Below are positions 10,445-64,000 of a stretch of 64,000 bases of DNA, piece after piece. Each line of letters opens with the position of its first letter. Within the stretch, counting starts at the first letter, position 1. A model generated the notes under the pieces. It had not been told where the DNA came from. It saw only the letters and a list, made by a program, of their open reading frames with translations, and did not search any database. Origin of the DNA: Hamiltosporidium tvaerminnensis FI-OER-3-3. Taxonomy: Eukaryota > Fungi > Microsporidia. Both the position numbers and the translations under genes were made by a program. The DNA lies in the NCBI GenBank assembly GCA_022605425.2, contig JAKIMF020000005.1, forward strand, positions 434,001 through 498,000. The letters run 5' to 3'.

Positions 10445-10516
10445 AAAGATCCTAAAAATAATTTAAATACCGAAAAATTCAACTTATTAAGATTTATATA
10501 TTTTAAGATCTAATAA

Positions 10517-11250: not shown

Positions 11251-11275
11251 ATAGAATAGAATTGAGATATAATAA

Positions 11276-20872: not shown

Positions 20873-20875
20873 TTT

Positions 20876-20970: not shown

Positions 20971-21014
20971 TTTTTTTGGTTTATATATATATATTTATAT
21001 TATAATATAAAAAA

Positions 21015-21742: not shown

Positions 21743-21752
21743 ATATAAAAAA

Positions 21753-31348: not shown

Positions 31349-31369
31349 TATAATATATATATATATATA
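31349..31369. repeat. (TA)n microsatellite at the cargo/arm junction (6 bp shorter at ~50168-50183); a similar tract lies at 20982-21008
   Basis: Directly visible. Confidence 0.8.
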
Positions 31370-37617: not shown

Positions 37618-38330
37618 GCGAGTGTAAAAAGCTTCATTAAAAACTATCTCCTGGCAAAAAAATATCTAAACTGCTGGTCAAAATATTGCTTTTGTTTTTG
37701 GTGGGACGAAAACTAAACCAAATTTTCGATTTTTCACGGGAATGCGTATAACAAGAGGAAGGTCTAAATAAAGAGTAAAAATTTTCCACGGTCTTTGTTT
37801 GTAGTATAAATAACTAGATTGGAGACCACAGCCGAAATTGTATCTAGTTGTATGTGAAAGCATGAAAAATTAGCTTTACTCACTCGGCTTAGAGAGTTTA
37901 GCGCTTCGATGATGCAAAAAAGTTACCTTTTAAATAACCAGGTCACAGAGAAGCAAATTTTTTCCCCTTAAGACATTTAAATGTCTAAGTAACGCATGTA
38001 AGTTTAAGATACGTCTTAATATGAAATACGTTCGGCTCACAAATGTAAAGTAAGTAAGATATTACTGGTTTTAGGGAAATTACAAGGTTTATTTCGACCT
38101 AAAATTACGCTCGTAGCAACAAAAATGTGCGAAAAACGATCTCGATACGATCATTAAATAGTCCTACATATATTTTTAGAGGAAAATTTTTGAAATATTG
38201 GTATATCAAAGAAGACTGATGGAATGCTGGGGAGGCTGTGATTTTTTTAAATCTAGAACTGCGTTAATGTCATGAAAACAATATAAAATATCCAAAAAAC
38301 TTGTATATTTATTAGATGATAACTCTTCTA
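37618..38330 (+). mobile_element. Old copy of the ~730-nt element (array unit 2)
   Basis: Duplicate of 18085-18795. Confidence 0.7.
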
Positions 38331-38539
38331 CTTTATACATATTTCAAGATATGAAAAAGTTTAATATTCGGTATACTTAATCAATGATGAAAAATCTTTA
38401 ACTAACAAATTCAATATAAAACTTATTTTAGAAAACCATAATCCTACTGTGTAACAAATTTAAATTTAAACATTAAGAACCATTAATAATATAAAGGTTA
38501 AAATTTGTCTGCAATATTAAAAAGTAATAATTATCGTAT

Positions 38540-40412: not shown

Positions 40413-40553
40413 TTAATTTATTTAATAAAATTCTGGGTTAAAACATTTTTACCATTTTTTACAAGTTTTTTTCTACCTCTTTAACCACTTCTGTCTCTTC
40501 TTCAAATCCTTTTTTTGGTTTATATATATATATTTATATTATAATATAAAAAA

Positions 40554-43500
40554 TTGGTAGAAAGAAAAATTTAGCAGCGAAACATTTAAAAAAATAAAAT
40601 AAAGGCCGCAAACGACGCCGATAAGGTTAATAAAAGTAATATTGGCATACAAAAATTTGAGCTACACCCACCGGCTATTTCCCTACTTTCCTCCTTCTAC
40701 ACAAAAAACACACATCCATCACCAAGCCAAACATGCAGTAAAATGCAAAATAGTAAGCTCTGCTCCTTATTTTTGCCTAATAATCCACTTCCCTTTTCGG
40801 TTGAAGTCTCTTCTTGCGAGCCATGGTACGACATGACAAACCCCATTACTCTAGCTATTCCAGAAGGTAACAGGCTAATGGCATTGCGGACGATATTCGA
40901 TTCCGCAACAGCCGACCCGAAGAGATGGCCTCGAATTGTTTTTTTGTAGTACAGACAAGGTTTGAAAGAATGACAGGAAATGGCTAGACAGAGCTTCACA
41001 TGTACTATGATAAGAAATTCGGCTAAACTGAAACTTTTGAAGTGTTTAAAAAATTGGCACAAAGTGAGATGGGAAAGGAATTAAAAACAGAAGAGAAGGG
41101 AGAGCGACGTAGAATCGCCACTTGTCTCGCTGATACATGCACCTTGACCGACACCACGGAGTACATAAACCTGAGAGATAAATTCTTGAGTAAAATCAAA
41201 GAAATCTCGGAGAACGAAATTGAAAAGTGGTGGTCCGAACTAGAAAACATCCGAATGAATTGGTTGACAGTAAAGTTTTAGACCTTATTAATCGAATTAT
41301 CGGTGAGTATGCTGATTCTTGTGTGCCGATGACGATAACTGCAGTGGCACGAATAATCCAGGCAGCCCAGGTATGCTATGACGAGGCAACAAGCAAAGAA
41401 AAGCCTAGATCCGCTTGGAAGGAAAACATAGAAAGTAAAATTTCTAAGTTAGTACTCTTCAAAGATCTTCTCGAGAAGGCCCGTAAGCAGGAAAAGCTCT
41501 CGACTTCGGAAAGAAGAGCCTTAAAAAAATCATGCGAGGATTTAATTTTAACTTGAGCAGCGTAACTGATCTTTCTGAGGCTTTAGTTAAGAAGAATAAA
41601 TCTTTGAATGTTTACAGGAAAAAAATTACGATGCATGAAAGTAAGAAGCAATTCCGAAAAGAGAGTCGTATGTTTGAGCTTTTCCGAGGTCGATTTTATC
41701 GTGGGTTTTCTGAGCGTGTAGATCCGAGCATGTGGTTAGTGGTGATGAAATTGTGAGTTTTTGGTCTACAATGTGGAACAAAAATGATGACACAGTCACG
41801 TACGATGATTATTTGATTCCATTTGTATCAGATAATCATCCGACCACGTTTCCTTCACTTGATGAATTTGTGAATATCATTAATTGGCTCCCTAATTGGA
41901 AAGCTGCTGGAATTGATGGTATTTACAATTTTTTCATTAAGCAACTTACAACTCTTCACAAATACCTTTATGATATTGTGAAAGTTATATGTTTAGAAGG
42001 AACACCACAAGCTGATTGGTTTTACTGCGGGCTTACGTATTTGATACCGAAAGGAATTCCACGAAGAGGCTCTGACTACAGGCCAATCACTTGTATGTCC
42101 AACCTCTATAAGTTAACGACAAAGTGTGTAACGAAAGTCGTTCAACTTGAAGTGGAAAGGCGAGGGTTGCTTGCAGAGAACCAATTAGGGGCGGTAAGAG
42201 GTGTGCAGGGAGCGAAAGAGCAGGCTCTACTGAATATTGCCTTAAATAAAGAGTATGGAAATAATCTTAAGGCAACATGGATTGATGTTAAAAAAGCTTA
42301 TGACTCAATAGATCATGCTTATTTAACTCAATGCATTGAAAACCTTAATTTACCTGATTGGATCCTGAAATTTATTAAGGTAATTATATCAAAATAGAAA
42401 ATTTCTATATCAGCAGGGCCTGAAAAAATCATGAGCAAGAATATTGATAAAAGGATTCTGCAAGGAGATAGTTTGTTACCTTTGTTATTTGTTTTGTGTA
42501 TGGATCCATTAAGCCGAAAGCTTAATGAAAAATACACAAAAGTGACGGTACAAACAGATGCAAAATCCCATTCTACTAATCATCTCTTGTTTATTCATGA
42601 TCTGAGCTTTTTGCATAAGACAGTTCTACATTGAATGCTTTGACAGACAGAGCAAAGGAATTTTTAGAGGTGATTTGCCTAGAGATTAACAAAGAGAAGT
42701 CAGCCACAAATAATAAGTGTTGTGAAGATAGTGCTACTCTTCTAGAAGGTTTTAGTGTTTACAAATATTTAGGAATAATAGAAGATAGCAGAGGAATACC
42801 AACACGTAGCTCATTTGAAGAAGTACAGAGCAAATTGATAGCAAGAGTTGAAAGACATTGTCACATTAGATTAAATTCAAAAATTTTTTTCTGCAATCAA
42901 TCAACATGCGATATCGTTAATCAACTACCACATAGGAGTACTTCAACTTGAACCGGCTGACTTCTCTAAGTTAGATGATGCAGTGCGTGCGGTGTTGGTG
43001 AAGAATAAGATACATCTCCGCCCAGGATGTAAAGAGCGTTTATACCTTCCTATAACAGAACTTGTAAGTGGCCTACATAGTGTTGAGTTGCGAAGCGAAC
43101 ATATGCTTCTGCAACTCTTGGATTGTCTGAAAAAAAGTAAAGAAATATCAACTAGACGAGCAGCAATCTTCAAAGTTGAGAATAAAAATAAAACCCATCT
43201 TGCACTAATAAAAGGCTTCTTAAAAGTAAAGTACAGGTTGGTAGAAAAAGTCACTAGGAAAAAATTAGAAGATGATCAACTTGCGAAACTATATAACGAA
43301 ATAGAAAAACGAAAACTCCATTCAAAGTTATATAATGCAAGAAAAAATGAGCTTGTTAGTGTTAGTGATTCTTCTAGATGGCTAAAGAGAGGGAATATTA
43401 GGGCACAAAATGAAGCTGTGTTCTGCTATATCCAGGATAAAAATGTATTATGGGGAGCAGATGGTATGTGTCAATATTGCGGGAAGTCTGGTAAGACTGT

Positions 43501-44345
43501 AGATCATCTAGCAACTCGATGTGAAAAAATGCTAGGTATGACTACACCAGACGAAATAATGAAGTGGTTAGATGCATAAACTTACTTCTCCTAAATAGAT
43601 ATAAGTTTAAGTCCTCAAAACGAATTAGGAGTCACGCAGTTCAAGAAATTCTTCATAATGAGTATGCAGAGATAAGAGTGGACATCAGAATTAAAACTGA
43701 TGTTAAAATTCGGAATAAAAGACCGGACATATTTATTTTAGATAAGAAGAAGAATAAGATAACACTCATTGAAGTAGGAATCACTTCCCAAGATTCACTT
43801 CAAATAGTTGAAACTGAAAAACTTAGGAAGTATGACCTGCTAGCCAATGAGTTGGGTCTTATTTATAGGTGTAGTGTTGAGATAATCCCTTATGTGATGA
43901 CCTGGGACGGTATTGTGACAAAATACCATAAATCTCATCTTAAAAGACTAGAAATACCTATGAATGTAGAGGCATACATTCAGTCTATAGTACTTAAGAA
44001 GACAGTCGAAACAATTTCCTTTGATAGACGAAGAGGACTTGAGTCAGAACTAAATGCCGAAGAGAGCTGGGAGAGAGCGTCAATGAGTGTTATTATGAGA
44101 TCAGAGATGCATGAGGAACCAACACCCTCTTATAAAGAAGAGAAGAGAGAGGAAGATGGTGTTAAAATTTTAAAACCAAAAAATAATACACCCTTTATTT
44201 CACAAGGAGAATCCACGTTAGAGGAACCGACCATAAACATAAAGAAGAGTCGGATTTAGAAGAAGAGACAAAAGTGGTTAAAGAGGTAGAAGAAAACATG
44301 TAAAAAATTGTAAAAATTTATAACCCAGAATTTTATTAAATAAAT
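40554..44345 (+). mobile_element. R4/Dong-like RT-REL element, disrupted copy 2
   Basis: WIDVKKAYDSIDH, ILQGDSL, FIHD, and the REL motif RPDIFILDKKKNKITLIEVG..EKLRKY. Confidence 0.93.
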
Positions 44346-47300
44346 ATAAATCGACACAAAAATTATAAATTTGTTTTGTCTTTATCTTTACTTCTTTTAG
44401 AATAATCCTAAAAATAATTTAAATACAAAAAATTTATCTTAGTAAGATTTATGTATTTTGAGCTGAAGTTTTTTTTGAAAATATTAAAAAATTATTGCTA
44501 ATAGAAAATATATAATATTTAGATTTATTGGGAAAGACTAATTGTGTATCCGTATTTTTTTGATTTTTAATTGTCTAGTATGTAAGTTGCAAAAAGAAGT
44601 TGGACCAATGAGATTATCAGATATGATATTTGATATTTGAAACATTCTCTTTATTTTTCTTTAGTCGATAACTGACATTTAATCTTATTTTTCTAAAACT
44701 TATACTATGTTTTATTCAGAAACGAATAAAATACATTTAATTATTTAAACAAATTTTTCTTTGTACTTCTAATTATACTGCAAATATTCTTGGAGAGATA
44801 AATAGATAATGTATAATAAGCTACTTTAATAAATATAATAATTTTTAAATAGCTATTGTTAGTGAATAGGACATTAAATTCCCGGTGAAGTCATACATAA
44901 ATTATATTCTTGCATGAGAAGGGAAAAATAAACGTAATTATCAGCTAAAATATACGTTCAAAAAAATATAATGTTACTTATTCATCAAATTCAATTTATA
45001 CTAGTATTAAAATAGACTAGACAAGCATTTTTTGTCGAAATGACTTATAATTAAAAAATAACACACTGAATTAAGAAATAAAGTTATATTTGCTAAATTT
45101 GTTTCTTTCATAGAAATAAAAGAATAACTTTTTAAAAAGACTTTAATTTTAAGTTAAATTAGCAGAGATTTATTTTGTTTGTTTTTAAAATATAACAAAG
45201 GATATATTTAAGACAATGAATGATTTTTTTATTTAAAATAATGATTTTAAAAAAACTCAAAAATTTACACATTTTTAACTTCATATATATTTTAATGAAC
45301 TAATCTAAACATAAAAGCAAAATTATTCTGGAAATAATTCCTATTAAAGTTATATTGTATATTATTTTACAAATAATATAATTTGCTCCAAATAAATCAC
45401 GATAGATACAAAAAAAATCATTTGTATTACTTGTTCTATAACATATCGGTCTGTCAATATCTAAGTTTGATCTTATATGAACTTCATTTATCTTAATTAA
45501 GAGCCAATTTTAACGAATGTTTATAGAAGAAATCGTAGAATTTTTTTAACTCTATCAGAAATTTTTTTCGCGTGGCTTGAAACTCTGCGATTTTTATTGA
45601 AGTTTACACTTTTCTGTCAAGAGGATTTTCTCATTCGGTCAAAATGACTCGGATATCAGAGCGTGATTCTATCGATATGTATAATAAGCAAGATTTTAAT
45701 CCATCACTCACAATGTTTATTGCTAGAATGTCAGTTCACTCGGTGGATTATTGTGAACTTTTTTATACTACTTAAGCTCTTTAGGTTTTCTACAGAGAGT
45801 ACCGTTATATTAATTTTAACCAATATTCATATTTACTGTCATTTATATGATATACATAAGAACATTCATACGTATAATTTTTATTCGTTTCCTGTCCAAA
45901 CTCGAGATTTGAAGTTTTCTTTATTTCAAAGTATGTGTTATACACTGCTTGTGTTCTGTCTTTATTCTCCCGTATCATCTTTGTTATCTTGTGAAAAATA
46001 TTTTTAAATGAAAGTATGATATTGTTTCGTGAAATATTTATGTACTAAAATAAGAAATTGATATTTTTTGGTCCATAGAACTCATCTTGTGCTATCCATT
46101 TTTTTGTGTTTAAAAAATAATGTGTTTCTTTAATTCGAGACTAACATTTCTAGCATTTCTTTCAGGATCCTTTAATGTTTACGGTAGTATCTAAGCAATC
46201 GTAATAAGCTGCGCGGTTTCCGTTTCTGTGCTGGGAATCTTTTGTACAGTTTTATCTGTACTATAGCTGCATTGAGCTTGATGTCAAAGGAGGATATAAG
46301 AAGGTGCATCTATTGTCTCAAACAGTAGAATATCTCGAGATTTTTTGCAAGTTTTTAAGTTACCACAATTTTCTAGGTCTTTTTTTAGAATCATTCGAAT
46401 TAGGCTTACATCGTTTATCATATTCTGCAATTCGACTAAGGATTCGAAAAAGAATACCCTTTGATTCACCTCTATAGAAATTAAAAACCATAGATTACGG
46501 GACAATACATAACATTTCTCCAAATAAATTTAAGAAAATCTTTGTTTAATTGCTGTTAAACCTTCGAAAAACACATTTGTTATTCCATATGAGTAATTTT
46601 TAAGTTCTAAAAAAAGGAGTTTTAGTTATATATGTGAAAGCAGATGAATAGAAAAAAATGAATGTAATTGCTCACTAATTTGAGCAGACTAATTTGGTTA
46701 TTTTTTTGTGAATTAAAAAAAAAGAAATTTATCTGATCTACAGATATTTGCAATATTTCCAGATTTTTGGAATCAGAGAAATAATTTATTTACAAGCGAT
46801 TTTCTTGGTAGCTACTATCTCGACTTAAAAAACTTCAACGAGTTTTTTTTTTATTTATCAATGAGAAAATAATCGCTAAGATTTCACGAGTTAAGGCTTT
46901 AAAAGGATATTCGTGTTGCTATTTAGGCCTGACTTTCGAATTGGAAGTTTGCTTCCCAAACAAGCTGATTGTATTTAACATCCGCTCAAATGGTTAGTCA
47001 TATACATCTATCTCATTCAGATAAGTCACCAAATGTTCATTGAATACTTATATAACTACGATTCAAAATTTAAACCCAAAGCCTTTTGATATATACCTAC
47101 CTTGATTTTTCTCGTTTATTTAATTCTATTTTTCTATTTTCATAATTTGTTTCTAGATAAATTTTCTTTGCTAGTCTAACATTCATGGTATGCATTTTAT
47201 TCTCTAACAAATCCACTTTTTATTCGCCATCTTCTACAGTAATTTTTTATCCTTTGCTGGTTTGGTGCATAATTTCGATTTTAAGTACCAATTTAAAAGC

Positions 47301-50181
47301 ATTTACCCGTCATAGTCCTAAAAAAAAGATAATTTTGTCAGTCCTTTCTTGTGTATATTTAGCAAATTTTTCGGAGCATCATTTCTATGCCGTCGAATGT
47401 TTTCTAAAATATTCGCAAGAACTTAATCAATCCCCGATTTTTCTATCGAAAAGATTCCATAGATTGACTCTTGGTTTTTAACAGTCTAATTTTCAAAATC
47501 TAAGGCATTTGAGCCATTTCGGTTTTTATAATTTCCGGTGATTTTATTAGTCTAGCGTCTGCCATTTTGTACATTTTAAGATATCGTTCACTCGATGTAT
47601 TGTGTATGAGCTAAAATGGTATATTTTTTAGTTAACCACAATATTAATTCACAATTTTTAGGTAAAAATATATATTCATGCAGTATAATATACTATAAAC
47701 AATCATGATTTAGCTCGGATGAAGATTCAATGGCATCGCTTATTCCTTTGAATCTTCAAAGGCTTTTTTCTCGAATTGTTTCATTTTTGTTCATTCATTG
47801 CCTACTTAGGCATTTATGTCACATACTACTGCTTTTTTTTTCTTGTATCTAATCACATGATTTTCGACAAACTAGCAAAGCTATTCTTTTATATTTGCCT
47901 TTTTAACTTAAATGCGAGCATGGCCCTAGAACTGTGAAACCAAAGAGTTCTCCGTCTAATTTTTTCCGTAAAAAATTAAACTTATTCCTTAAAAATTCTT
48001 TGCAGTGTAAAGTAAATATATATTAAAGAAAATATTGTACCAGACATATTCGAAGTGTTTTTTTGCAATACAATTTATCCAACCATTTGTTTAAATACTT
48101 CTGTTTTTATAGAGCGATTTCTCGCAGTAATCGATTTAAATTTTATATTTTTTTATAATAGCTTGTAAATATCCAGGTTCTAGTCTGGAAGTATGTTCAA
48201 ATGAAAAATGCCGTCAAGTTTTCTTTTAAAAGTTATTTCGTCTCTTTTTATTCAGAATCGTTTTCCTTTTTTTCTAATTTGTTCTCCTGTAGCTTTTTTT
48301 ATGTTTTATAAATCCTTAATTTTTTGCACGGTTGGTTTTTCGCCTGAAGCTTCATCCATCTCTTTTCTTATCCAGTTTGAATCAGCTATACCTGGCTTCT
48401 TTTTGAATAGATCAAAAATTTTAAATTTGAATATTAAATAAAATGAAATACACTTTGGGCATGAGAAATTTACAATCCGAACATGTAAAATCGAATCCTT
48501 TTAGGTTGATAATTTGCAAACATTTTGTTTCGTTTTAAAATAAATATTTCTATGGCGGCATAGTGAAAACATAGAAAAACATGCAAAAAAGAAATATGTA
48601 TAGAGGAGATATTCTATCGATCACGGCTGTGTTTTGTTGAATCAAATGATCTCACTTTACCGAGAAACGCAGGGTTAAAAGCATCTGTAAAGCCTGCCGC
48701 TTCAAAGAACATATTTCTAATCCTCTATAATCGTATAAACTTTGTAATGCTTTGGAGAATACCAGTTACATAAATAGAATCCACATAATTGTTTTAGAAC
48801 AATTATCTAAAAAGTGAAAAAAAAGTAACTAAAAATACTAGATTTATTAAAAAGAAATTACAGCTTTTTTAAAATGCCCAAAGTGTTTAGAAAAAATTAA
48901 AACAAAACAAGGAAAACCCAAGACATAGCTTATGTCATAGGGTAAAAGAAACAGCTGGTTTAAAGTTGAAAGTTTTTCAGCATTAAAATTATCAGATATT
49001 TTTATTAGGGTAAATACTAAATTGTTAATGCTATCTCGTAAAAATACTTCTATATAATATGTTGATTTTGTTCTCAAGGCCTTGATCTTTCTTTTACAGT
49101 AACAAAATAAATGTGTTTTGGATTAGTATGTAAACAGCATATACACAAGTTACAAACGAAACCAGTAAGAGACCCATATAGGTTTTAATTGAGAAATAAA
49201 CGTTTGTTTTTGCAATTTTAAGAGCCACTTGAATTATTTTAAGTAAATAAAGAAGAAGCTTAGAAATGTTAATGAAAAAAATTTTCTAAGAACAAATTCG
49301 CACAATAGAAAGCTTCATCATATTTTTACAAGATAGTAACAAATGTAATACGAGAATATTAAAAAGCATTACATATTCGATATACAAAAAAATTAATGTT
49401 ACAAATAACATTGTAATTTGAAAAATTGGTATACATGAGTTTTTAGTTCTAAGAAATCTTTGAGATAGATAGAGAACGAATAAAGGATATTCTACAATGG
49501 TATTAAGCGTATTAAGGATATAAATATATTTTAGGTCATTGAAGCAAAATGAAAAGAAACCTTACGCGTGAAATTCGACAAAAGGTATAAAAACTATGCA
49601 TTAAAAGAATAGTTTGCAATTATGCTTCGAATTAAAATGAGTAAATTATCGGTATCGGCATCACTTATTAAATGCATGTTCAATGATTAAAAGTTAAAAT
49701 AAAATAAATCTTTAAATAAATTCTTTAAAAGAAGATACAAAAAGGAAACAATACATTTAAATAGAAACACATACTAATGCTCAGAGTAACTCAATAATGT
49801 ATTTATTTTTGATATAAAAGAAATCAAAATTACAAGATTAGTTAGATAATAAAAAAATTCTGCTCAATATACTAGAAACCAAAAATCTAAGAGGCATGAC
49901 TTTTTACCTGCCTAACTTAATTATATTTTTTTATAGTTTGAAATAATTTCATACTATAACATGAAGTGATGTAGTTCAGAACATCTTATGATATATTTTA
50001 GAAGACACCAGAACAGATAAAGAATGCACCTATATGGTTGAACATGCTGCACGAGCACATATAACCACTCTTTTTTAAAGTATTTGATTATAAGCAAGGT
50101 TTGGTATATATCAGAGCTTTAGGGTATATTGTAATATCATACTAGAAAAAGGATACAAAAACGAATTATAATATATATATA

Positions 50182-52932
50182 TAATTCAATAAAATGGAAG
50201 TTATAAAAAAATAAATACCCAAATTATTGTGCAAAATCGATGGTTAAAGGCTCAAAGTATAATTTACAACCAAAATATAGAATAAAAATTATTTAAAAAT
50301 ATATTCAATGAAATGAAAATAGGAAATGTAAATCCGAATAACAAATAAATCTGAAATTACTGATATGCCAAAAATCAATATTTTCCAGTATTATGATATT
50401 AGATTGTGTTTTATAGTTTGTTTTAATAATTCTAAAAATATATTTTTGATTGTAATTATTTAAGCACTAGTATCTTTTATAAATAGCAACAATAATAGAA
50501 AACTTGCGAAAGTCATTGCCGGAAACAGCTCGAAACTATTTTTTAAACACATCTTAGAAAATTAAATTCGATTCGTTTGTATTTTAAAATTTTCACGGAT
50601 TAGTTCTGTGCTAGAATTATTTAGATTGCACCTGGTACTTTTTTTAAGTAAAACACCAAAGTTTATAACTCCTATTATTGGTTATAAATGCCGTATCTAC
50701 TCTAGTCTTTACAGTGATATAAAAACCGAAAATACAAGGGGCATATAAGGTACTCTGATTTCGTTTATAACGAAACAAGGTACTTTATACATCCCTAAAC
50801 TTATGCAACAATACTTTATATTTGATTTTTGTCAAAAAAAATGTTTTACAGTGGTTTAATTTATACGAATAAAGAAATTGAAGATATATTAAGTAAATTG
50901 GGTTTTAAAAAATAAAAAATAAATTAAAATCGAATTTTATTGTTAAAATAAATATGCTCAAAATATCGCTAAATACAAATTTTGTAAAAATTATTAAAAA
51001 TTACCATCATAATAAAAAGAGAAGGAATTAAATTACTTGACACACTTGTTTAAAAAAATATATTGTAGCTTGCAATAATATATTTTTTCCATTATAGTGT
51101 AAAAATTTTAACATTTTGAAAATATTTTTGTATAATAATTAAACAAATTTAACTTTCTTTCGCTGTGCTAATTTACCAATACGAAATTTTTTTTCCTTCA
51201 GGTTCGCGAAATAAATTTTTTTAGCTATTCTTTTTAAATATTTCAGAAAATTCTTTACCTTTTATAATATAAATGGTCTCTTAATGACTAGATTTAAACT
51301 TGTTGCACATTTTTTTAATAATTTTAATTGTATTAATTATATCACACATTCTATTTAATCAAATGCTAGAGAAATGTAAAAATTAGAAAGTTTTTTATCT
51401 AATAAATAGCTAATTTTTTTTTTTGTAAAAATGTTATATTATTCCATGACAATGATGCAGCCATTGGTAGCTTAGATCCAGGTTCTCAAACATTCAGTCG
51501 GTGCATTTCGATAAACCTCTATCTCCATGCAATAACTCCCATATGTAGGTAAAATATTTTGAATGGGGGATCTGGTTTTTCTTGATTGTTAATGTCAGTT
51601 GCTCGAGAGTGATCGCAGGTCTAAATAAACATCGGCTACGCCATGATACGCAGTATTATCATTTTTTTAGATTTTTGAACCCAATAGAGTGACGGATAAG
51701 ATTATTTGTAGCTCATTTATTAAGATAAAGTAGTATTACAATCTCACACATGTTGTTAATGTGCATCGCGAAGATGAATAAATACTTCGTATTTAATTCA
51801 ATTACTTTATGATGTAATCCCAATGGCTTTATTAGACATTGATACGATATGAGAATCGATAACAAGTTGTTATATTTGTGATGTATAGATTTAAAAATAC
51901 GTAAGTTTTATATTTGGATATCTTTTCATGAAGATTTTGTTTACTATAATAAAAACTAGTCACAAAGAAAGAAATTCCACCATCCAACAGGTATAATCTA
52001 TTATTTACGACCTGGTTTTTTAAATAATATATTTTTGTATCTCCGAAATTCCAAGCCTTCGTAACTGAATATAAAAAGCTAAGGCTTTACGCTTTCACAT
52101 CGCAATAACTTAAAATTTATTATTTCCTGTCGTATTTTATTCTGTTTCCCCGGTAAAAAATATAAACAGCTTTAATAAAATATCGACTCGAAATTGCACT
52201 AATTTTTCGTATGTAAAATGAAAATTTAAAAATTCCCAAGGTTTCAATTAGATTTTCTATCTATATGCTCGGTTTTTAAAGAATTTCTTACTAAAAATTT
52301 TCTAATTTTTTGTTGTTATTTGATTTTGTCTCCCCTCTATTTTATTCTATCACCCTCCCATTTTGAATGCATTTCCTTGTTAAATTGCATAATTAGAGTA
52401 AATATATGTCAATAAAAACCGTAAAAAAAATATTTTTTTAAAACCGTCTGATTTAAAGTATATTTTTATAATTTAAGTCTTTTTTTCTCCATTTTTTAAA
52501 TCTTATATTTTAGATTTTGAATTAAATTCAAAGTGTGTCATTTAAAGGAAAAGTAAAAAAAGCCAGTGAGAAGAATAGCATATAAAAAGCGGAATAAAAC
52601 AGGATACATTTAAATTCAAATTTTTTTTTATTCTGTAATAATTTTTCTTAACTTTATTTTTTTGATTTCCTTTTTTTATAATAAATTTTATTTTTTTGCA
52701 TTTTTTTTGATTTTTATAAATTCTTTTTAATTTTTTTTTGGTTTTAAAAGAATCTTAGTTTAACAAATTTTTAATTTATCACAAAATATATTTTTTCCGG
52801 GTAAAAAGCCATTTACCGATAAAAAAAACTCTAAATAGAATATTTTTTAATCCCCATCCGATTTAGCAGTGTGTGATCTGCTGAATTTTACTTTTGGCCA
52901 GGGTAAGAACAATGGGGGGGGGTCAATATAAA
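50182..52932 (+). repeat. Long arm, right arm of cassette 2
   Basis: Duplicate of 31368-34097. Confidence 0.9.
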
Positions 52933-54412
52933 GTACAACATTAAATGATTAAAATAGCAACTGTAGTAGTTAAAAAATGTTTTTTATGTGTAGCTTTTTC
53001 ATCAAATATATTGGTTGATATACCAACTCATGCTCTTTTATGCATTTTGATATATGATTAATTCGTCTCATCATGATCTAGTTTTCTAATCCAAACCAGA
53101 GTAAAAGAAGGTCAAGAGGCCGGCTTTTCTCTAAAATTAAAAGATTTTTTTATGTCTAAACATTGACTTAGATATAAATAAGTCCTTGATGGTTCTCAAA
53201 ATGATGCTTGATATAAATTAGAGTTATTTACTAGATAATCACACTAAAATTTTATGAATGTTTTTCTGCAATCCATTTGATAATGATTGAGGCATTTTAA
53301 TTATTATGTAAGCGTTCGAAGATACAACTTATTCAATCAATGCTAAAATTGTAAAGAACAGCATTCGGTCAAATCTATACGGTAATAATCTGATATAAAG
53401 TAATTTCAGCCCAGAGAGCGTGTACACAATAATTCTGATATTGTTTATTTTTCAATCTAAATAAAATTTGATTTCATATTGTATTAAAACATCTAATACG
53501 TGAGATTATAGAGGATTTATGATCTAGACAAATATAAATTCAAAAAAATTTAAATATCATCTTCGATTTAAAAAAGTACCTTGATTTTTAATGAGTAGCC
53601 AATAGCAATTTAAAAAAACGTTAGATCGACGATTATGATACATAATAAAATACCTTCTAATTAATTAAAAATATGTTTTTTGGTAATAATCTTTGCAAGA
53701 GATCTTTGGCTAAGTTAGATACTCTATATCTCTTTTATGTGAAAAATATGCATTGAATCATAAATATCTCTGAGAATCAAAAGTAGGCTTTTACCAATCA
53801 TAATAAATATTAAGCTGTTGATAATCAGGTTTCTATATACTATACATATATAATCTTCTAAATTAAGATTTATGTGTAAATTATTTCATAAATCAGGAAA
53901 TATATACTTAGTTAAATAGAGAAACTATACCTCTGTTTATTTGGATATCAATTTTCGTTATAAGATCAAAAATTTACCATTTAATAAAGCAATGTTTATT
54001 AGTCTTTAACGAAAAAATACTAGATTATATTTTTAGATTAAATTATTTTTAAGGGACCAGGATTTTATGAATGACTTGGTTTTTTTATAATTCGAAGCGT
54101 CAATATTGTTTTATGGTTCTTTACACCAATATATGATTATGTTTCAGCAATTTTAGTCAACAATAGCACCTTTAAACATAATTAAAGGCTCAAAACCATG
54201 ATCTGACTTTTCAAAAAACAGCAGATTAGAACTATAATAAGAAAATATTTTGCTGTTAATTTATATTTTGAGATTTAAGAAACAAAAATTATTATAGAAT
54301 TGCCAAATTAAAAAATTGTGAATAAAAATATTTTTTTTACTTCATTATGGTATTTTATCATGTGATTATATTTTAAAAGAAAAAATTCTTGTTTATGGAT
54401 ATTTATATCAGA

Positions 54413-55751
54413 TCATTCCAAATTCATAAGTGAAAGTATTAAATTTTTGCATTTTTCTTCAATTTCATGAAAAGCTATAGATATGTTTTTGATATTTGCA
54501 TAGAACTTTAATTCTTCTCGATAAGTAGAAATAATTTCACCATATTCGTCAATACAAAAATTATATGCAAAAGAATCTACCCTATCTATATGAGCAGATA
54601 ATTCCATAGATTGAATAAAACATTTATTTTTTAAAGTGAAATCGTCTTTTTTTATTTTCTTTTCGAAAAAATATCCTTTGTTTATATATTCTATAGAAAA
54701 TATATTGTTTACAACCATAACTATATCTTTTCTAATTGGATTCACGTAATCCACATCTACTCTACGCGTAGGCATTGATTTAAGGCTTAGGATAGACTGA
54801 TTTTGCAAATCATGAAAATTCTCTTCTATCTTTTCCGTAAATTTAATCGCAGAATACTTCAAAAAAAGTTCTTCTGATACAAAAAAAGCTTTTAATTCCT
54901 TAAGATTTTGAAAGTATATTATATATTCAGAAGAAACAATTTTTTCATAATAGAATTTTACAGTGAAAAAGTTTTAGAAGTATCCTCAGAACTTAAGAAA
55001 AAGCCATCATTTTTCAAATTATTCGAACTACTATCAAAAAAAATACAGGGGTCATGAATGACGTATTTCTAACTTTTAGATATTTAAAAATAATTTTCTT
55101 GAATAAAAAGATATCTAAATTTGGTATTTTTCCTCGACAAATAAAGATAAATGTTTTTTGACTAAGAAAATTTGTCGCATTCATCTGGAAATCCAGACTT
55201 TTAGAGAAAATCTTTTTGATAGATTCTATATTTAAATTTTCATTCTTAAAATTGTTTATATAGTAATGAAAATATCTGAAGAGTTTAGAAATGTCCTCGT
55301 AAATAAAATTTGTTCCGTTATTTATTACAATTTTTTCTTTCGGTTTACACATTTTTCCTTCTAAATGATTATTCAATGCACATAAAATTTTTTTAATAAT
55401 GTTCTCAGTGTTTAAATTTGAATCTTCAGACCAATCAAATTGAACATAAAAAAAATGTGTTTTTATCGTCTTAGAATGTGTGATTTTATTTATGAATCCC
55501 TCAAAATCTGCAATTGTTGTAAGATTATTTGTTTCTATGAAATATACATCATTAAATGCATTTTTAGAATAACCAGAAAATAACTGCTCTATCAGATTAA
55601 ATGCATGCTTCTCAAAATATGTAGTTTCCTCTTTATAGGGAAACATACCCTTATCTGGTATCGTTTTATTTGACTTCGAAAGATAAATTTGTCCTACAAT
55701 AAATACTATTATAATAAACATTTCTTGTTTAATTAATATTAAGATATTCAT
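54413..55751 (-). pseudogene. Frameshifted copy 3 of the arrayed secreted-protein gene
   Basis: Same two 1-bp deletions as copy 1 (A8 at 55036-55043; missing C at ~54965). Confidence 0.85.
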
Positions 55752-56456
55752 AAACACATTTGTTTCTTTACTTATATAATTTGTGATAATAAATTAAAAA
55801 TAACAAATTGTAATTTGATTAATTAAATTTTTTAATCAATCAAATCTTAAATTCAGAACTTATGAAAATTTAATTTAAAATCATTATTCGAGTTAGAACC
55901 AACATAAATTTGATTTTAATATAAATAATTCTAGTTTTTAGAAAATTTCAAGTTTAATTCATATGATGAATAATTTATATTTTTTTTAATTTATATTAAT
56001 ATTCTGGTTCATAAATTTATATTAAGGTTAATATAATACTTAAGAATGCAACATTATATGCATTTTTTGGTTGTAGATACTTAGTTATAAGTTCTTACGG
56101 ATCTTGCTGTCTTCCATTTTTCGTTTTTACCTGACTCTTTTGACCAAAATCGTTCTATTTAGAAAGACATTTTCAATATAAATTCATTTCTTTAGGAAGC
56201 CAGCTGGGTTTGAAGTATTTTGGCTCCAATAAGATCACCTTTCTGACTTTAATTTCTGATATTAAAATTAAAATGTTGTCTTAGAGAAGCTATCGCGCCG
56301 TTTATATTTATTTTTAAGATCTGTAGTTGAGGAATACTTTTCCTTTGCCTTTATGTAATATCCATTCTGCTAGCCTTTCTGGTATTACCCATTAAGGTTT
56401 TAAAGATTGTATAATTAGAAATTTCCATAAGATATATATAATCTCCAGGCTTTAGG

Positions 56457-57165
56457 CGAGGGTAAAAAACTTCATTAAAAACTATCTCCTGGCAAAAAAA
56501 TATCTAAATTGCTGGTTAAAATATTGCTTTTGTTTTTGGTGGGACGAAAACTACACCAGATTTTAGATTTTTCACGGGAATGGGTATAAAATGAGGAAGG
56601 TCTAAATAAAGAGTAAAAATTTTCCACGGTCTTTGTTTGTAGTATATATAACTAGATTGGAGACCACGGCTGAAATTGTAGGTAGTTGTATGTGAAAGCA
56701 TGAAAAATTAGCTTTACTCACTCGGCTTAGAGAGTTTAGCGCTTTGATGATGCAAAAAAGTTACCTTTTAAATAACCAAGGCACGGAGAAGCAGGTTATT
56801 TCCCCTTAAGACATTTAAATGTCTAATTTGAAGCATGTAAGTTTAAGATATGTCTTAACATGAAATATATTCGTCTCAAAAATGTAAAGTAAGTAAGATA
56901 TTACGTGTTTTAGGGGAATTACAAGGTTTATTTCGACCTAAAATTACACTCGTAGCAACAAAAATGTGCGAAAAACGATCTCGACACGCTCATTAAATAG
57001 TCCTACATATATTTTTAGAGGAAAAGCTTTAGAATATTGGTATATCAAAAAAACTGATGGAATGCTGGGGAGGCAGTGATTTTTTTTAAATCTAGAACTG
57101 CGTTAATGTCATGAAAACAATATAAAATACCCAAAAAAATTGTATATTAATTAGATAATAACCCT
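56457..57165 (+). mobile_element. Old copy of the ~730-nt element (array unit 3)
   Basis: Duplicate of 18085-18795. Confidence 0.7.
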
Positions 57166-57380
57166 TCTACTTTATACATATTTCAAGATCCGAAAAAGTT
57201 TAATGTACCGAATAATCAATACAATGATGAAAAATCTTTAACGAATAAATTCTAATATAAAGCTTATTTTATAAAACCATAATACTACTGATGTAACAAA
57301 TTTTAATTTATACATTAGGAACCATTGATAATATAAAGGTTAAAATTTTTACGTAATATTAAAAAGTAATAATTGTAGTA

Positions 57381-59262
57381 TTTTATATTGACTCCCCCTG
57401 CTGAATTTTACCCTGGCAAAAAGAAAAATCAAGAAGATCATCACACCTGCTAAATCGGATGAGATGGCAAAATTATTCGTATTATAGTTTTTTTGGCGGG
57501 AAACGCTTAAAGGTGGGAAAATAATTATTTCTGGATAAATAAAAGAATTTTAATAAAACAAGACCTCTCTAAATCGAAAAAAATTTAAAGAAATTAAAAA
57601 AAAGTCAAAAAAAATTAGAAAAATACTAAAATTAATTTAAAATAAAAATGAAATTATAAAAAATTAAAAAAATAAAATACAGAAAAATTATCACAGAATA
57701 AAAAAAATGAGAAAAATTTGATTTTTAAAGTGGTTTTATTTTGAGTTTTTTTTATATGCTTATCTTCTCACAGGTTTCTTTTACTTTTACTTTATATATG
57801 ACACACTTTTATAGTTTAATCTAAAAATATAAAGATTTAAAAATTTGAAAAAACAAAGGAAATAAGAGTTAAGTTACATATGACCCTTTAAATTAAAGGG
57901 TTTATAAAATATATTTTTTTAGGGTTTTTTTAATATATTTTTAAATCTTATTTATCCTATTATATAAGGAAAAGCATTTAAGAACAAGAGGGAGACAAAA
58001 TAATATGACAAAAAAAATATGTGGATATTAGTAATAAATTCTTCCAAAACCGAGCATATAGAATATTAAAATCAAGTAAAATAGCGAAAATTTTTAAATT
58101 TGTATTTTAAATACCAAAACATTGGGGTAAGTCCTTGAAGATGGCATTTTATTATGGCTTTTATATTTTTTGACAGTGGGAGCAAAATAAAATACCACAA
58201 TAATATAGAATTTGTTTTTGAATTTGCACAATAAAATATTTTTGGATAAGTAAATCAAACCAGCAGAAAGAAATTATGATAAGTTTAAAGTTTTGTAAAA
58301 ATTATTGTCAAAATATTTGTATTTTTTACAATTTAATGAGACTAAAATACTATTGCAGCAGTATTATTTTTTTACAGCAAGTTTGCGAAATAACTCAATT
58401 CTGCTTCCTTTTTATTGTAAATGTGTAGTTTATAATATATTTCGACAAATTTTTCTGATTGGATCGATATTATTGGCCTATTAATTGGCACATTAATTGG
58501 CAAAAGAATGCGATTTTAATTATTTTAAATTTTTCAAAAACACAATTTACTTTATATATCTTTAATTTCTTTATTCGTATAAATGAAACCACTGTAAAAA
58601 AACTTCCTGAAAAAAATTAAATATAAAGTATTGTAGATTTAGTTCGGGGATGTATAAAGTGCCTTGTTTCGTTTCAAACGAAATCAGGTACATTATACTC
58701 CCCTTTTATCTTCGGTTTTTATATCAGTGTAGAGACTAGAGTAGATACGCTATTTACGACTTATAATAGGAGTTATGAGTCTTTCGTGTTTTACTTAAAA
58801 AAAGTACATGGTGTAATCTAAATCATTCTAGCACAGAACAAATCAGTGAAAATTCAAAAATACAAACGAATCGAATTTAATTTTCTAAGATATGTTTAAA
58901 AAATAGTTTCGAGCATTTTCCGGCAAATACTTTCGGGAAATTTTTATTATCGTTGCTATTTATAAAAGATACTAGTGCTTAAATAATTACAATCAAAAAA
59001 ATATATTTGTAGCATTATTAAAACCATCTATAAAACATAATCTAATATTATAATACTAGAAAATATAAATTTTTTGCATATCAGTAATTTCAGATGTATT
59101 TCTTGTTCGGATTTACATTACCTATTTTCATTTAATTGAATATATTTTTAAAAAAATTTTATTCTATATTTTGGTTGTAAATAATATTTTGAGCCTTTAA
59201 CCATCGATTTTGCAAAATAATTTGGGTAGTTGTTTTTTTATAACTTCCATTTTCTTGAATTA
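57381..59262 (-). repeat. Long inverted arm, left arm of cassette 3
   Basis: Outer part to ~58490 matches the other left arms; the inner part contains a tract identical to RC of the arm starting at 63059. Confidence 0.9.
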
Positions 59263-62200
59263 TTTAATAAAATTCTGGGTTAAAATATTTTTAACATTTT
59301 TATATGTTTTCTTCTACCTCTTTAACCACTTTTGTCTCTTCTTCCAAATCCGACTCTTCATTTATGTTATTGGTCGGTTCCTCTAAAGTGGTTCCTCCTT
59401 GTAAAATAAAGGGTGCTTTATATTTTGGTTTAAAATTTTTTGCACCATCTTCCTCTGTTTTCGCTTCTTTTAAAGGGGGTATTGGTTCTTCATGCATCTC
59501 TGATCTCATAATAACACCCATTGACGCTCTCTCCCAGCTCTCTTCGGCATTTAGTCCTGACTCAAGTCCTCTTCGTCGATCAAAGGAAATTGTTTCGACT
59601 GTTTTCTTAAGTACTATAGACTGAATGTATGCCTCTACATTCATGGGTAATTCTAGTCTTTTAAGGTGAGATTTATGGTATTTTGTCACAATACCGTCCC
59701 AGGTCATCACATAAGGGATTATCTCAACACTACACTTATAAATAAGGCCCAACTCATTGGCTAGCAGGTCATACTTCCTAAGTTTTTCAGTTTCAACTAT
59801 TTGAAGTGAATCTTGGGAAGTGATTCCTACTTCAATGAGTGTTATCTTATTCTTCTTCTTATCTAAAATAAATATGTCCGGTCTGTTATTCCGAATTTTA
59901 ACATCAGTTTTAATTCTGGTGTCCACTCTTATCTCTGCATACTCATTATCAAGAATTTCTTGAACTGAGTGGCTCCTTATTCGTTTTGAAGACTTAAACT
60001 TATATCTATTTAAGAGAAGTAAGTGTAGGCATCTAACCACTTCATTATGCCGTCTAGTGTAATCATGGCCTAGTATTTTTTCACATCGAGTTGCTAGATG
60101 ATCTACAGTCTTACCAGATTCATTGCAATGTTGGCACATACCATCTGCTCCCTAGAATACATTTCTATCCTGGATATAGCAGAACGCAGCTTCATTTCGC
60201 GGCCTAATATTCCCTCTCTTTAGCAATCTAGAAGAGTCACTAACACTCACAAGCTCTTTTTTTCGTGCATTATATAACTTTGAATGAAGTTTTCGTTTTT
60301 CTATTTCGTTATATAGTTTTGCAAGGTGAGCATCTTCTAAACTTTTCTTAGTGACTTCTTCTACCAACCTGTACTTTACTTTTAAGAAGCCTTTTATTAG
60401 TGCAAGATGGGTTTTATTATTATTCTCCACCTTGAGGATTGCTGCTCATCTAGTTGATATTTCTTTACTTTTTTCCAGACAATCCAAGAGTTGCAGAAGC
60501 ATATGTTCGCTTCGCAACTCAACACTATGTAAGCCTCTTCCAAGTTCTGTTCTAGGAAGATACAACCGCTCTTTACATCCTAGGCGGAGATGTATCTTAT
60601 TCTTCACGCGCACCGCACGCACTGCATCATCTAACTTAGAGAAGTCAGTCGGTTCAAGTCGAAGTACTCCTATGTGGTAGTTGATTAACGATATCGCATG
60701 TTGATTGATTGCAGAAAATAAATTTTTTGCATTTAATCTAGTGTGACAAAGTCTTTCAACTCTTGATATAAGTTTGCTCTGTACTTCTTCAAATGAGCTA
60801 CGTGTTGGGATTCCTCTGCTATCTTCTATTATTCCTAAATATTTGTAAACACTAACACCTTCTAGAAAAGTAGCAGTATCTTCACAACACGTATCATTTG
60901 TGGCTGACTTCTCTTTGTTAATCTCTAAGCCAATCACCTCTAAAAATTCTTTTGCCTCGCCTGTCATAGCACTCAATGTGGAACTGTCTCTAGCAAGGAG
61001 CTTTCGATCATCAATAAACAAGAGATGATTAGTAGAATCGGATTCTGCATCTGTTTGTAGTGTCACTTGTGTATTTTTCAAAAGTTTTCGGCTCAATGGA
61101 TCCATACACAACACAAACAACAATGGTGACAAACTATCTCCTTGCAGAATCACTTCTCTCAATCTTTTTGCTCATGGTTTTTTCAGGCCCTACTAATATA
61201 TCAATTTTACATTTTTATAATTACCTTAATAAATTTCAAGATCTAAACAGGTAAATTAAGGTTTTCAATGCATTGAGTTAAATAAGCATGATGTATTGAA
61301 TCATAAACTTTTTTAACATCAATCATGTCGCCTTAAGATTTTTTCCCTACTCTTTATTGAAAGCAATATTCAGTAGAGCCTGCTCTTTCGCTCCCTGCAC
61401 ACCTCTTACCGCCCCTAATTGGTTCTCTGCAAGCAACCCTCGCCTTTCCACTTCAAGTTGAACGACTTTCGTTACACACTTTGTCGTTAACTTATAGAGG
61501 TTGGACATACAAGTGATTGGCCTGTAGTTAGAGCCTCTTCGTGGAATTCCTTTCGGTATCAAATACGTAAGCCCGCAGTAAAACCAATCAGCTTGAGTTT
61601 TTCCTTCTAAAAATATAACATTCACAATATCATAAATATATTTGTGAAGAGTTGTAAGTTTCTTAATGAAAAAATTGTAAATACCATCAATTCCAGCAGC
61701 TTTCCTATTGGGAAGCCAATTAATGATATTTACAAATTCATCAAGTGAAGGAAACGTGGTCCGATGATCATCTGATACAAATGGAATCAAATAATCATCA
61801 TACGTGACTGTTTCATCATTTTTGTTCCACATTGTAGACCAAAAACTCACAATTTCATCACCACTAACCACATGCTCGGATCTACACGCTCAGATAACCC
61901 ACGATAAAATCGACCTCGGAAAAGCTCAAACATACGACTCTCTTTTCGGAATTGCTTCTTACTTTCATGCATCGTAATTTTTTTCCTGTAAACATTCAAA
62001 GATTTATTCTTCTTAACTAAAGCCTCAGAAAGATCAGTTACGCTGCTAAAGTTTAAATTAAACTCTCGCATGATTTTCTTAAGGCTCTTCGTTTCCGAAG
62101 TGAAGAGCTTTTCCTGCTTACGAGCCTTCTCGAGAAGATTTTTTGAATGTAATAACTTAGAAATTTTACTTTCTATGTTTTCCTTCCAAGCGGATCTAGG

Positions 62201-63058
62201 CTTTTCTTTGCGTGTTGCCTCGTCATAGCATATCTGCGCAGCTTGCATGATATACGCGGCTTCCGTAATTGACTCAGGTACATGAGCTCCTGCATATTCA
62301 CCGACTACTCGATTAATGAGATCCAGAACTTTACTATCAACCAATTCATTTGGATGTTTTCTAGTTCGGACCACCACTTTTCCAATTTCGTTCTCCGAGA
62401 TTTCTTTGATTTTACTCAAGAATTTATCTCTCAGATTTTATGTACTCCGTGGTGTCGGTCAGGGTGCATGTATTAATTAGACAAGTGGCGATTCTACGTC
62501 GTTCTCTATTCTCTTCTGATTTTTCTTCCTTTCCCATCTCACTTTGGGCCAATTTTTTAACACTTCGAGAGTTACAGCGCAGCCGAATTTCTAATTATAG
62601 TACCTGTGAAGCTCTGTCCAGCCATTTCTTGGCATTCTTTCAAACCTTGTCTGTACTGCAAAAAAAACAATTCGAGGCCATTCCTTCGGGTCGGCTGTTA
62701 CGGAATCGAATATCGTCTTCAATGCCATTAGCCTGTTACCTTCCGGAATAGCTAGAGTACAGGGGCTTGTCATGTCGTACGATGGCTCGTACGTAAAGAC
62801 TTCAACCGAAGAGGGAACTGGTGCATTAGGCGAAGGTAAGGTGTCAAGCCCACTATTTTGCATTTTACTGCATGTTTGGCTTGGTGGTGGAGGTGTTATT
62901 GTTGTGTAGGAGGAGGAAGGTAGGGAGATCGCCGGTGGGTGTAGCTTACATTTTTGTACCTCACTATCACTCTTCTTCATCTCATCAGCGTCGTTTGCAG
63001 CCTTTATTTTGGTATTTTTCGATATTTCGCTACTAACATTTTTCTTTCTACCCATACC
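59260..63058 (-). mobile_element. R4/Dong-like RT-REL element, full-length span (ATG 63055 to stop 59300, ~1250 codons), frameshifted but with intact FIDD and REL motifs
   Basis: QGDSLSP, HLLFIDD, YKYLG, ERLYLPR..GRGL, CQHC..TVDHLATRC, RHNEVV, RPDI..IEV; single-ORF RT-CCHC-REL layout of the R2 superfamily. Confidence 0.95.
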
Positions 63059-64000
63059 CAATTAAATAGAAGTTATAAAAAATAAATACTCAAATTATTG
63101 GGCAAAATCGATGGTTAAAGACTCAAAGGATAATTTACAACTAAAATATAGAATAAAAATTATTTAAAAATATATTTAATGAAATGAAAATAGGTAATGT
63201 AAATCTAAAAAGAAATACATCTGAAATTTCTGATATGCCAAAAATCAATATTTTCCAGTATTATGATATTAGATTGTGTTTTATAGTTTGTTTTAATAAT
63301 GCTACAAATATTTTTTTGATTGTAATTATTTAAGCACTAGTATCTTCTAATAATAGCAAAGATAATAAAAAAAATTGCGAAAGTTATTGCCGGAAAAGTC
63401 TCAAAACTATTTTTTAAACCCATCTTAGAAAATTAAATTCGATTCTTTGTATTTTTGAATTTTCACTGATTTGTTCTGTGCTAGAATGATTTAGATTACA
63501 CCATGTACTTTTTTTAAGTAAAACACGAAAGACTCATAACTCCTATTATAAGTCGTAAATAGCGTATCTACTCTAGTCTCTACACTGATATAAAAACCGA
63601 AGATAAAAAAGGATCGTACAAGGAACCTTATTCGTTGAAACGAAACAAGGCACTTTATACATCCCAGAACTAAATCTACAATACTTTATATTTTATTTTT
63701 TTCAAAAAAAATGTTTTACAGTGGTTTAATTTATGCGAATAGGAAAATTGAAGATATATAAAGTAAATTGGGTTTTTAAAAAATAAAAAATAAATGAAAA
63801 TCGAATTTTATTGTTTAAATAAATATGCCCATAATATCGATATGACTACAAATTTTGTCGAAATATATTATAAACTACAAATTTACAATAAAAAGGAGGC
63901 AGAGTTGAGTTATTTCGCAAACTTGCTGTAAAAAAATAATACTGCTGCAATAGTATTTTAGTCTCATTAAATTGTAAAAAATACAAATATTTTGACAATA
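63059..64000 (+). repeat. Long arm, right arm of cassette 3 (runs off the window end)
   Basis: RC of ~58300-59255. Confidence 0.9.

Follow-up and report, generated by a model that had tools for sequence, protein, structure and literature searches.

Can a long interspersed nuclear element (LINE), a type of retroelement that is to our knowledge described as being without terminal repeats, be flanked by kilobase-long inverted repeats of its own, or can the DNA into which it has inserted give it that appearance? The question is raised by a stretch of 64,000 nucleotides from the microsporidian Hamiltosporidium tvaerminnensis FI-OER-3-3 (assembly GCA_022605425.2, contig JAKIMF020000005.1, positions 434,001 to 498,000 of the forward strand; hereafter the window, numbered from its first base), at the right edge of which a LINE with reverse-transcriptase (RT) and restriction-like endonuclease (RLE) regions lies between two inverted arms. 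An earlier note on this DNA had taken the arrangement for a candidate new element architecture, either a composite unit in which a LINE travels inside the terminal inverted repeats (TIRs) of a foldback element, or a sequence-specific LINE with the centre of a palindromic repeat as its target. The analysis described here leads to a different answer: for this element the repeat structure of the locus mimics long terminal repeats, and the reading that we favour, with moderate confidence, is that an ordinary multi-copy RLE LINE, by now decayed, entered an older inverted repeat of the locus at its AT-rich centre. On this reading the arms are locus DNA under gene conversion.

Anatomy of the enclosed element

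The window is AT-rich (approximately 25% GC) and is dominated by a tandem repeat of approximately 18.8-19.5 kb with one LINE copy per unit, giving three cassettes, of which cassette 3 forms the right edge of the window (Table 1). The LINE of cassette 3 is complete at both ends. Its ATG (63055-63053) directly abuts the end of the right arm (...AATTGGGT followed immediately by ATG), and its stop codon (59302-59300) is followed by a 3' untranslated region (UTR; 59299-59261), after which the left arm runs from 59260 downwards. The enclosure without any spacer that had been described from a first reading of the sequence was thus confirmed base for base. The GC content of the LINE is 38%, versus 23% in the arms. 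The presence of complete LINE termini on both sides points to insertion rather than rearrangement, and insertion at the centre between the arms would account for both termini touching arm ends.

Table 1. Coordinates of the LINE copies, arms and associated features in the window
Feature	Position	Strand	Remarks
Cassette-3 LINE, both ends complete	59261..63055	-	3,795 bp; one broken gene and 39-nt 3' UTR
RT domain	60826..61526	-	Bounds approximate, transferred from one relative (its Pfam RVT_1 span)
CCHC motif and PD-(D/E)XK RLE	59570..60136	-	Motifs and predicted fold
AL3, left arm of cassette 3	57374..59260	+	Outer ~1.1 kb apparently old; inner ~0.8 kb (from ~58470) kept similar
AR3, right arm of cassette 3	63056..64000	-	Visible part only; mosaic
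Gene-conversion tract	58699..58866 / 63446-63613	.	168 nt, 99%; 100% in alignment columns 481-640
Second conversion tract	58303-58453 / 63850-64000	.	97%
AL2, left arm of cassette 2	38549..40417	+	Cassette-1 counterpart AL1 ~19002-20878
r, inverted LINE 3' end	40418..40509	-	92 nt: last codons and 3' UTR; adjoins arm end
TA-rich spacer	40510..40552	.	43 nt, with (TA)6.5; between r and LINE start
Cassette-2 LINE, broken gene	40553..44343	+	Cassette-1 counterpart 21752-25536
X, non-coding	44344..50170	.	5.8 kb; between LINE 3' end and right arm; cassette-1 counterpart 25537-31352
(TA)n tract	50171..50183	.	Abuts inner end of right arm; cassette-1 counterpart 31353-31369
AR2, right arm of cassette 2	50184..52940	-	AR1 31370-34105; AR0 (truncated) 12092-14583
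Two full tandem units	21743..59351	+	Each: LINE(+), X, right arm, gene region, left arm, r

Identity and decay of the LINE

The uninterrupted RT stretch of the element matches Pfam RVT_1 with E=2e-11, and its full-length relatives, which comprise 1,080-1,400 residues with a central RT, reach RVT_1 scores of 1e-28 to 1e-32. When a profile of 13 relatives was compared with the PDB, R2 proteins scored best (2.7e-38), followed by L1 ORF2 (1e-33). Moreover, the C-terminal stretch is 46% identical to the C-terminus of one relative, and residues C2, C5, H14, C19, R30, H31, P87, K119, K122, and Y123 of this region are invariant in 23 sequences. They correspond to C-C-H-C, RH, the P of PD, and K..KY, the same motifs as in the published definition of the endonuclease of R2 (PMC4838377). 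An AlphaFold 2 model of the CCHC-RLE region has a pLDDT above 90 over residues 1-190; its top 7 fold matches in the PDB are all R2 proteins (E 6e-8 to 5e-6), and at E<1e-5 the fold search returns R2 proteins only. Pfam searches of the window stretches and of 7 full-length relatives detected no apurinic/apyrimidinic-type endonuclease (APE; Exo_endo_phos), and no N-terminal DNA-binding domain of the zinc finger or Myb type was detected by Pfam in the window stretches or the full-length relatives. What lies between the arms is a defunct R2-superfamily LINE whose single open reading frame (ORF) has the order RT-CCHC-RLE; this domain order and the membership of the superfamily, both given in the earlier note, are borne out by the RVT_1 match, the invariant motifs, and the predicted fold.

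The same note had listed 63055-59300 as an ORF, but this frame is not open, as the homology-supported frame of the cassette-3 LINE contains approximately 11 in-frame stops and at least three frame shifts. The LINE of cassette 1 carries 8 stops and at least six frame shifts, and that of cassette 2 carries 3 in-frame stops and at least five frame shifts. The three copies are 90-91% alike. No stop or frame shift is common to all three of them, which implies that they were intact when the copies split; the LINE decayed after its arrival. A reassigned stop codon was considered as a cause of the stops and discarded, because 10 of the 11 stops of cassette 3 are private to that copy and frame shifts are present as well. 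Shared disabling mutations were also used as a test of DNA-level duplication, and with none present in all three copies they did not separate the models. Similarly, a test for codon-position selection between copies was uninformative, its ratio being equal to that of a dead duplicate pair, and RNA folding of the LINE 3' end gave no signal (z = 0.26).

The RT stretch has 1,346 relatives in a representative protein library. The closest of these are Hamiltosporidium fragments annotated as 'reverse transcriptase', with 80-95% identity; they come from H. tvaerminnensis and H. magnivora and are spread over at least 11 contigs, and the LINE family is multi-copy in Hamiltosporidium. One such fragment (KAK1347890.1) is located on a 969-kb contig of a long-read assembly. 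Next in similarity are proteins of the microsporidian Dictyocoela muelleri and a protein of Octopus sinensis. Octopus sinensis XP_029654503.1 is a full-length relative with an N-terminal Ets DNA-binding domain (Pfam 1.4e-18) fused to the LINE protein; the domain may have been borrowed for targeting, or the fusion may stem from the gene model.

Age contrast between arms and LINE, and gene conversion between the arms

The arms of cassette 3 form an inverted repeat (58303-59252 versus 64000-63064) with 88.9% identity over 955 aligned bases, a similarity well above what chance would produce; a repeat search splits it into eight ungapped blocks of 80-99%. The arm length of approximately 1.85 kb that had been proposed earlier holds for the left arm, of which the outer boundary lies near 57374-57379 as judged by the arms of the other cassettes; the right arm is cut off by the window end, with 945 bp visible. 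Seven arm copies, alternating in orientation, are present in the window. In their outer part of approximately 1.1 kb, left and right arms are 62-71% identical, whereas in the inner approximately 0.8 kb they are 94-100% identical in cassettes 1 and 2, and 80-100%, in a patchy manner, in cassette 3. Between the two arms of cassette 3 as a whole, identity per 80-column block ranges from 62% to 100%. By their divergence, the outer arm parts are far older than the LINE copies, which are ~90% identical to each other.

Besides this age contrast, the arms show signs of exchange. The right arm of cassette 3 is mosaic, its outermost ~150 visible bases resembling left arms and the bases just inside resembling the other right arms. 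The earlier note had reported an identical tract of about 160 bp that was private to the two arms of cassette 3; such a tract is indeed shared by both (168 nt), but it is not absent from the other arms, where its counterparts differ at 5-18% of positions. As each arm pair has private identical tracts of its own, arm-to-arm gene conversion is the process that they point to.

Arm-arm identity changes sharply approximately 0.8 kb away from the inner end, at the point where unit-to-unit identity drops, and the inner arms and LINE of cassette 3 have diverged by approximately 10% from cassettes 1 and 2 as a block. Both observations would suit a composite mobile unit, in which the inner ~0.8-kb arms are the TIRs of a foldback-like carrier with the LINE inside. 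We nevertheless consider such a unit very improbable. Conversion limited to the part of the arms that is still similar explains the boundary equally well, and target-site duplications (TSDs), which the earlier note had suggested might lie outside the arm pair, were looked for at the outer arm boundaries and not found, the flanks there having no direct repeat in common. In addition, the arms have neither a transposase nor coding capacity, as the longest arm ORF comprises 75 codons (none above 59 in AL3) and has no database relative. Within the window, arm copies are confined to the tandem array, and since their orientation alternates along it, the arms flank the gene-bearing segment no less than the LINE-bearing one. 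Finally, the content between the arms differs among the cassettes (LINE only in cassette 3, versus r, spacer, LINE, and X in the others, with a further repeat in cassette 1), and the seven related contigs described below have no long arms. The age contrast and the variable content between the arms argue that the arms are not part of the element, and a LINE inside foldback TIRs is disfavoured relative to a repeat that belongs to the locus.

An assembly artefact, produced by a fold-back or mis-join in a repeat-rich region, was judged to be the least probable explanation of the arms. Cassette 3 lies at the edge of the tandem array, beside repeats that broke short-read assemblies, and in H. magnivora the gene region is found on a 5.7-kb contig, which would fit such an error. 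However, a chimeric fold-back read would give arms of ~100% identity, whereas these are 89% identical and mosaic, and the left junction offers just 92 nt of homology for a mis-join.

In the right arms of cassettes 1 and 2, a stretch of approximately 0.9 kb (32378-33296 and 51193-52113) has no left-arm counterpart; either it was inserted into the right arms or it was lost from the left ones. Short repeats inside the arm amount to A/T-rich chance matches.

Variable content between the same arms

In cassettes 1 and 2 the order of the segments is left arm, r, spacer, LINE(+), X, (TA)n, and right arm. The r copy of cassette 1 (20879-20970) is identical to that of cassette 2, and the base at which r joins the arm end is also the one used by the full LINE copy of cassette 3. 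X contains neither RT homology nor coding capacity. Of all (TA)n tracts with n of at least 5 in the 64 kb, four out of six are located at cassette centres, where approximately 0.8 would be expected in the whole window. The 3' end of the LINE, its 5' end, and (TA)n plus X all abut an arm end within a few bases, and the 3' terminus of the LINE is the same in five 3' ends, including the 92-nt 5'-truncated copy, all of them in one duplicated locus.

Reverse-complemented, cassette 3 is colinear with arm, LINE, and arm of cassette 2 at ~90% identity (90-91% over left arm and LINE, except for r and spacer), and it lacks r, spacer, and X; the LINE orientation in cassettes 1 and 2 is opposite to that in cassette 3 between the same arm pair. 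This colinearity would suit rearrangement at the DNA level only, by which arm and LINE would have been inversely duplicated, flipped between the arms, or formed by break-induced replication from r, with the enclosure as a by-product. Moreover, the last ~15 arm bases occur in two variants, one of which always faces the LINE 5' side and the other the 3' side, thereby tracking LINE polarity in all three cassettes, and the codon-position differences between cassettes 2 and 3 (57/44/92) match in pattern those between cassettes 1 and 2 (39/29/60), a pair of dead duplicates. The equal divergence of LINE and inner arms would also be accommodated. Conversely, the breakpoints must then fall precisely on the two termini of the element, an earlier insertion beside the arm end is needed all the same to explain the arm/LINE junctions, and AL3 is not AR-like in diagnostic outer columns, contrary to a simple flip, so that conversion would be needed in addition. 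Taking both sides together, rearrangement as the sole process seems rather unlikely to us.

The constancy of the junctions allows another explanation, namely strict target specificity, in which the endonuclease recognises and nicks the inner arm end or the palindromic arm-arm junction. The 3' OH of the arm would then prime reverse transcription and create a constant junction between arm end and LINE 3' end, and nicking of both half-sites would yield a full copy with a short inverted partner. In agreement with this, the arm/LINE-3' junction lies at the same base in all three units, X with (TA)n joins the right arm at that base as well, and r and the three full-copy 3' ends all differ from one another to a similar extent (83-86 of 93-94 columns identical), so that orthology between r and the cassette-3 3' end is not required. 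Site-specific members of the R2 superfamily are known, R2 being one of them (PMC4838377). On the other hand, the junctions are found in tandem duplicates and may represent one event, and the Pfam searches detected no N-terminal DNA-binding domain. The 3' flanks of relatives and of plus-strand copies speak against it too: a candidate shared motif was sought in the flanks of L004 (twice) and L006 (twice), which are contigs introduced below, and of the plus-strand copies in the window, where X follows, and nothing common beyond A/T richness was found. We regard strict specificity for the arms as improbable, and return to the preferred reading, insertion at the AT-rich centre of an older repeat, after the relatives have been considered.

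The spacer of cassette 1 (20971-21751) also holds an insertion of ~740 bp belonging to a 760-bp repeat, with TATAAAAAA at both sides; cassette 2 has no such copy. The family to which it belongs (~33% GC) is present in the window at 10497-12000 (two tandem copies) and 20996-21772, and diverged copies are located at 2172-2645, 4672-5350, and 56533-57125. The cassette-1 copy seems to have arisen at this hotspot by an event of its own, either an insertion or a duplication.

Relatives elsewhere and short inverted 3'-end copies

Scans of metagenome and genome collections yielded seven short contigs (L001-L007) with elements that are 45-66% identical in the query stretch, and arm-like DNA was found in none of them. 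Contig L004 contains a nearly intact element, 45% identical to the window copy over the 238-residue RT query stretch, with an inverted repeat of 86-90 nt on both flanks (L004:59-148 versus 3609-3695). Its right repeat consists of the last codons and 3' UTR, its left repeat precedes the ATG by 44 nt, and the 3' terminus at which they end is the same for both. This layout (86-90 nt plus 44 nt) is the same as that of r plus spacer in cassettes 1 and 2 (92 nt plus 43 nt). Moreover, the start of the cassette-3 LINE matches that of a relative with no more than 45% identity in the RT stretch searched.

With two independent instances at hand (cassettes 1 and 2 here, and L004), it is conceivable, though in our estimate unlikely, that this RLE-LINE lineage regularly makes double-ended insertions, consisting of a full copy and an inverted 3'-end copy of ~90 nt placed 43-44 nt upstream of its start, primed from both cleaved DNA ends and preferably made at the centres of AT-rich palindromes. 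Penelope-like elements are described as carrying, at their 5' end, an inverted copy that is 5'-truncated, which has been stated not to be seen in target-primed reverse transcription of non-LTR (long terminal repeat) elements (PMC8557442), and in the light of that statement the ~90-nt inverted copy is the most interesting by-product of the analysis. If double-ended insertion is true, terminal inverted repeats, which have until now been attributed to Penelope-like elements, would also be found in true LINEs, and cassette 3 with its long arms would represent the most extreme form, in which the insertion went into the centre of a palindrome. If the short inverted copy is regular, the Penelope-type insertion geometry would reach LINEs that bear an endonuclease, which would bear on the use of both target strands at integration.

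Some of the other contigs show features of their own. In L006 two related copies are arranged tail-to-tail with AT-rich tandem repeats between them. L006 (NZ_JBOFRG010000245.1) and L007 (NZ_JBOFRG010000316.1) hold 3' parts of related eukaryotic LINEs (64-66% identity) in a 'Clostridium sp.' metagenome-assembled genome, and are probably AT-rich eukaryotic (microsporidian-like) contamination of the Clostridium bin. L003 carries 26-bp tandem repeats (approximately six copies; L003:1352-1534) upstream of the ORF of a related element; this contig was also considered as a partial tandem and rejected as such, as the piece found further upstream derives from the interior of another copy.

A proposed history of the locus

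In the history that we prefer, target-primed reverse transcription would have brought the LINE to the centre of the repeat, at or immediately beside a junction of the arm ends that is AT-rich and carries (TA)n. The arms would be an old inverted repeat of the locus that recurs with every ~19-kb tandem unit, and gene conversion between partner arms would keep only their inner ~0.8 kb similar. The repeat centre may have taken several insertions (r with the plus-strand copy, X, and the 760-bp repeat), or may have been flipped by recombination between the arms; the opposite LINE orientation may owe something to such a flip or to an insertion that took place separately. The role assigned to the (TA)n centre, as well as the order of these events, we infer from the arrangement of the segments.

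Several observations weigh against this history. All arm evidence comes from one locus, every junction derives from that same duplicated locus, and the three arm/LINE-3' junctions may be a single event. An empty arm-arm junction was not seen in the window. The cassette-3 LINE has diverged from the other copies by ~10%, as much as its inner arms have (~10-12%), and co-duplication of arm and LINE as DNA consequently fits equally well. The inner arm boundary coincides with the drop in identity between tandem units, which a discrete inner-arm module would also give. Lastly, cassette 3 is without X, the absence of which the model leaves unexplained.

The locus shows how tandem segmental duplication, inverted repeats, and gene conversion together make a LINE look as if it bears kilobase-sized terminal repeats, which is a useful warning for repeat annotation in microsporidian genomes rich in transposable elements. 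Moreover, it documents a decayed R2-superfamily LINE family in Hamiltosporidium.

The tandem array and its surroundings

The tandem units 21743-40509 and 40544-59351 are 96.5% identical, and a partial unit (12092-21018) is 94-95% identical to both full units. The gene region of the tandem unit carries a 448-codon Hamiltosporidium ORF (35573-36919, minus strand) that is 99% identical to the hypothetical protein CWI39_0923p0010 of Hamiltosporidium magnivora, a microsporidian parasite of Daphnia. This ORF and another at 3201-4517 (plus strand) are paralogues of approximately 440 codons, with a hydrophobic N-terminus and without a Pfam domain; shorter, apparently broken copies of the family are located at 16641-17384 and 55014-55757 (units 0 and 2). 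A short, strongly diverged RT-like remnant (6184-6579, minus strand), which is 28-37% identical to relatives, apparently belongs to another LINE family. Scans of viral contigs returned nothing relevant.

Comparison with known systems

The RLE-bearing, early-branching LINEs of the R2 superfamily include R2, R4, Dong, NeSL, CRE, and Hero. The Hamiltosporidium element shares with them a single ORF, a central RT, a C-terminal CCHC motif and PD-(D/E)XK endonuclease with RH and K..KY, and the lack of an APE, as well as a short A/T-rich 3' end and an association with AT-rich simple repeats; unlike them, it has no detected N-terminal zinc finger or Myb domain, and the copy is dead. Known targets in the superfamily are ribosomal DNA for R4 and (TAA)n for Dong. 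Here, Rfam and tRNA scans of the 64-kb window, arms included, returned no rRNA, tRNA, or other Rfam match, and the (TA)n tracts at cassette centres are those of one locus only. None of the searches brought up a named R4 or Dong sequence, and the R4/Dong label of the earlier note is putative; its one support is another microsporidian, Microsporidia sp. MB, in which LINEs under the RepeatModeler label 'Dong-R4' are the most abundant retroelements (PMC13174016).

With Penelope-like elements (PMC8557442) the locus has in common an inverted copy of the 3' end (~90 nt), which in cassettes 1 and 2 as well as in L004 precedes the start by 43-44 nt, short inverted repeats around the unit, and a bias to microsatellite-like DNA. 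It differs from these elements in its endonuclease, which by motifs and fold is an RLE and not GIY-YIG, in its RT, which groups with R2 and L1 in PDB searches, and in having no tandem of pseudo-LTRs (pLTRs) and no hammerhead motif found by Rfam. Among RLE LINEs, Genie 2 of Giardia, reportedly described by Burke et al. in 2002, is said to have an inverted 3' UTR copy at its 5' end.

Foldback or long-TIR elements (FB-NOF, Galileo) and Polintons resemble cassette 3 in their kilobase-scale inverted arms round an internal segment. Unlike in these elements, TSD, transposase, and integrase are absent here, the arms are tied to one tandemly duplicated locus, and the pattern of arm-arm identity agrees with an old repeat of which the inner part undergoes gene conversion. 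A further parallel is offered by large palindromes, as their arms are kept alike by gene conversion and their spacers undergo flip-flop inversion. The locus is like them in its patchy tracts of 97-100% identity that are private to an arm pair, and in the orientation of the enclosed segment, which varies by cassette; it is unlike them in that the segment enclosed here is a complete retroelement, the termini of which are the boundaries of the spacer.

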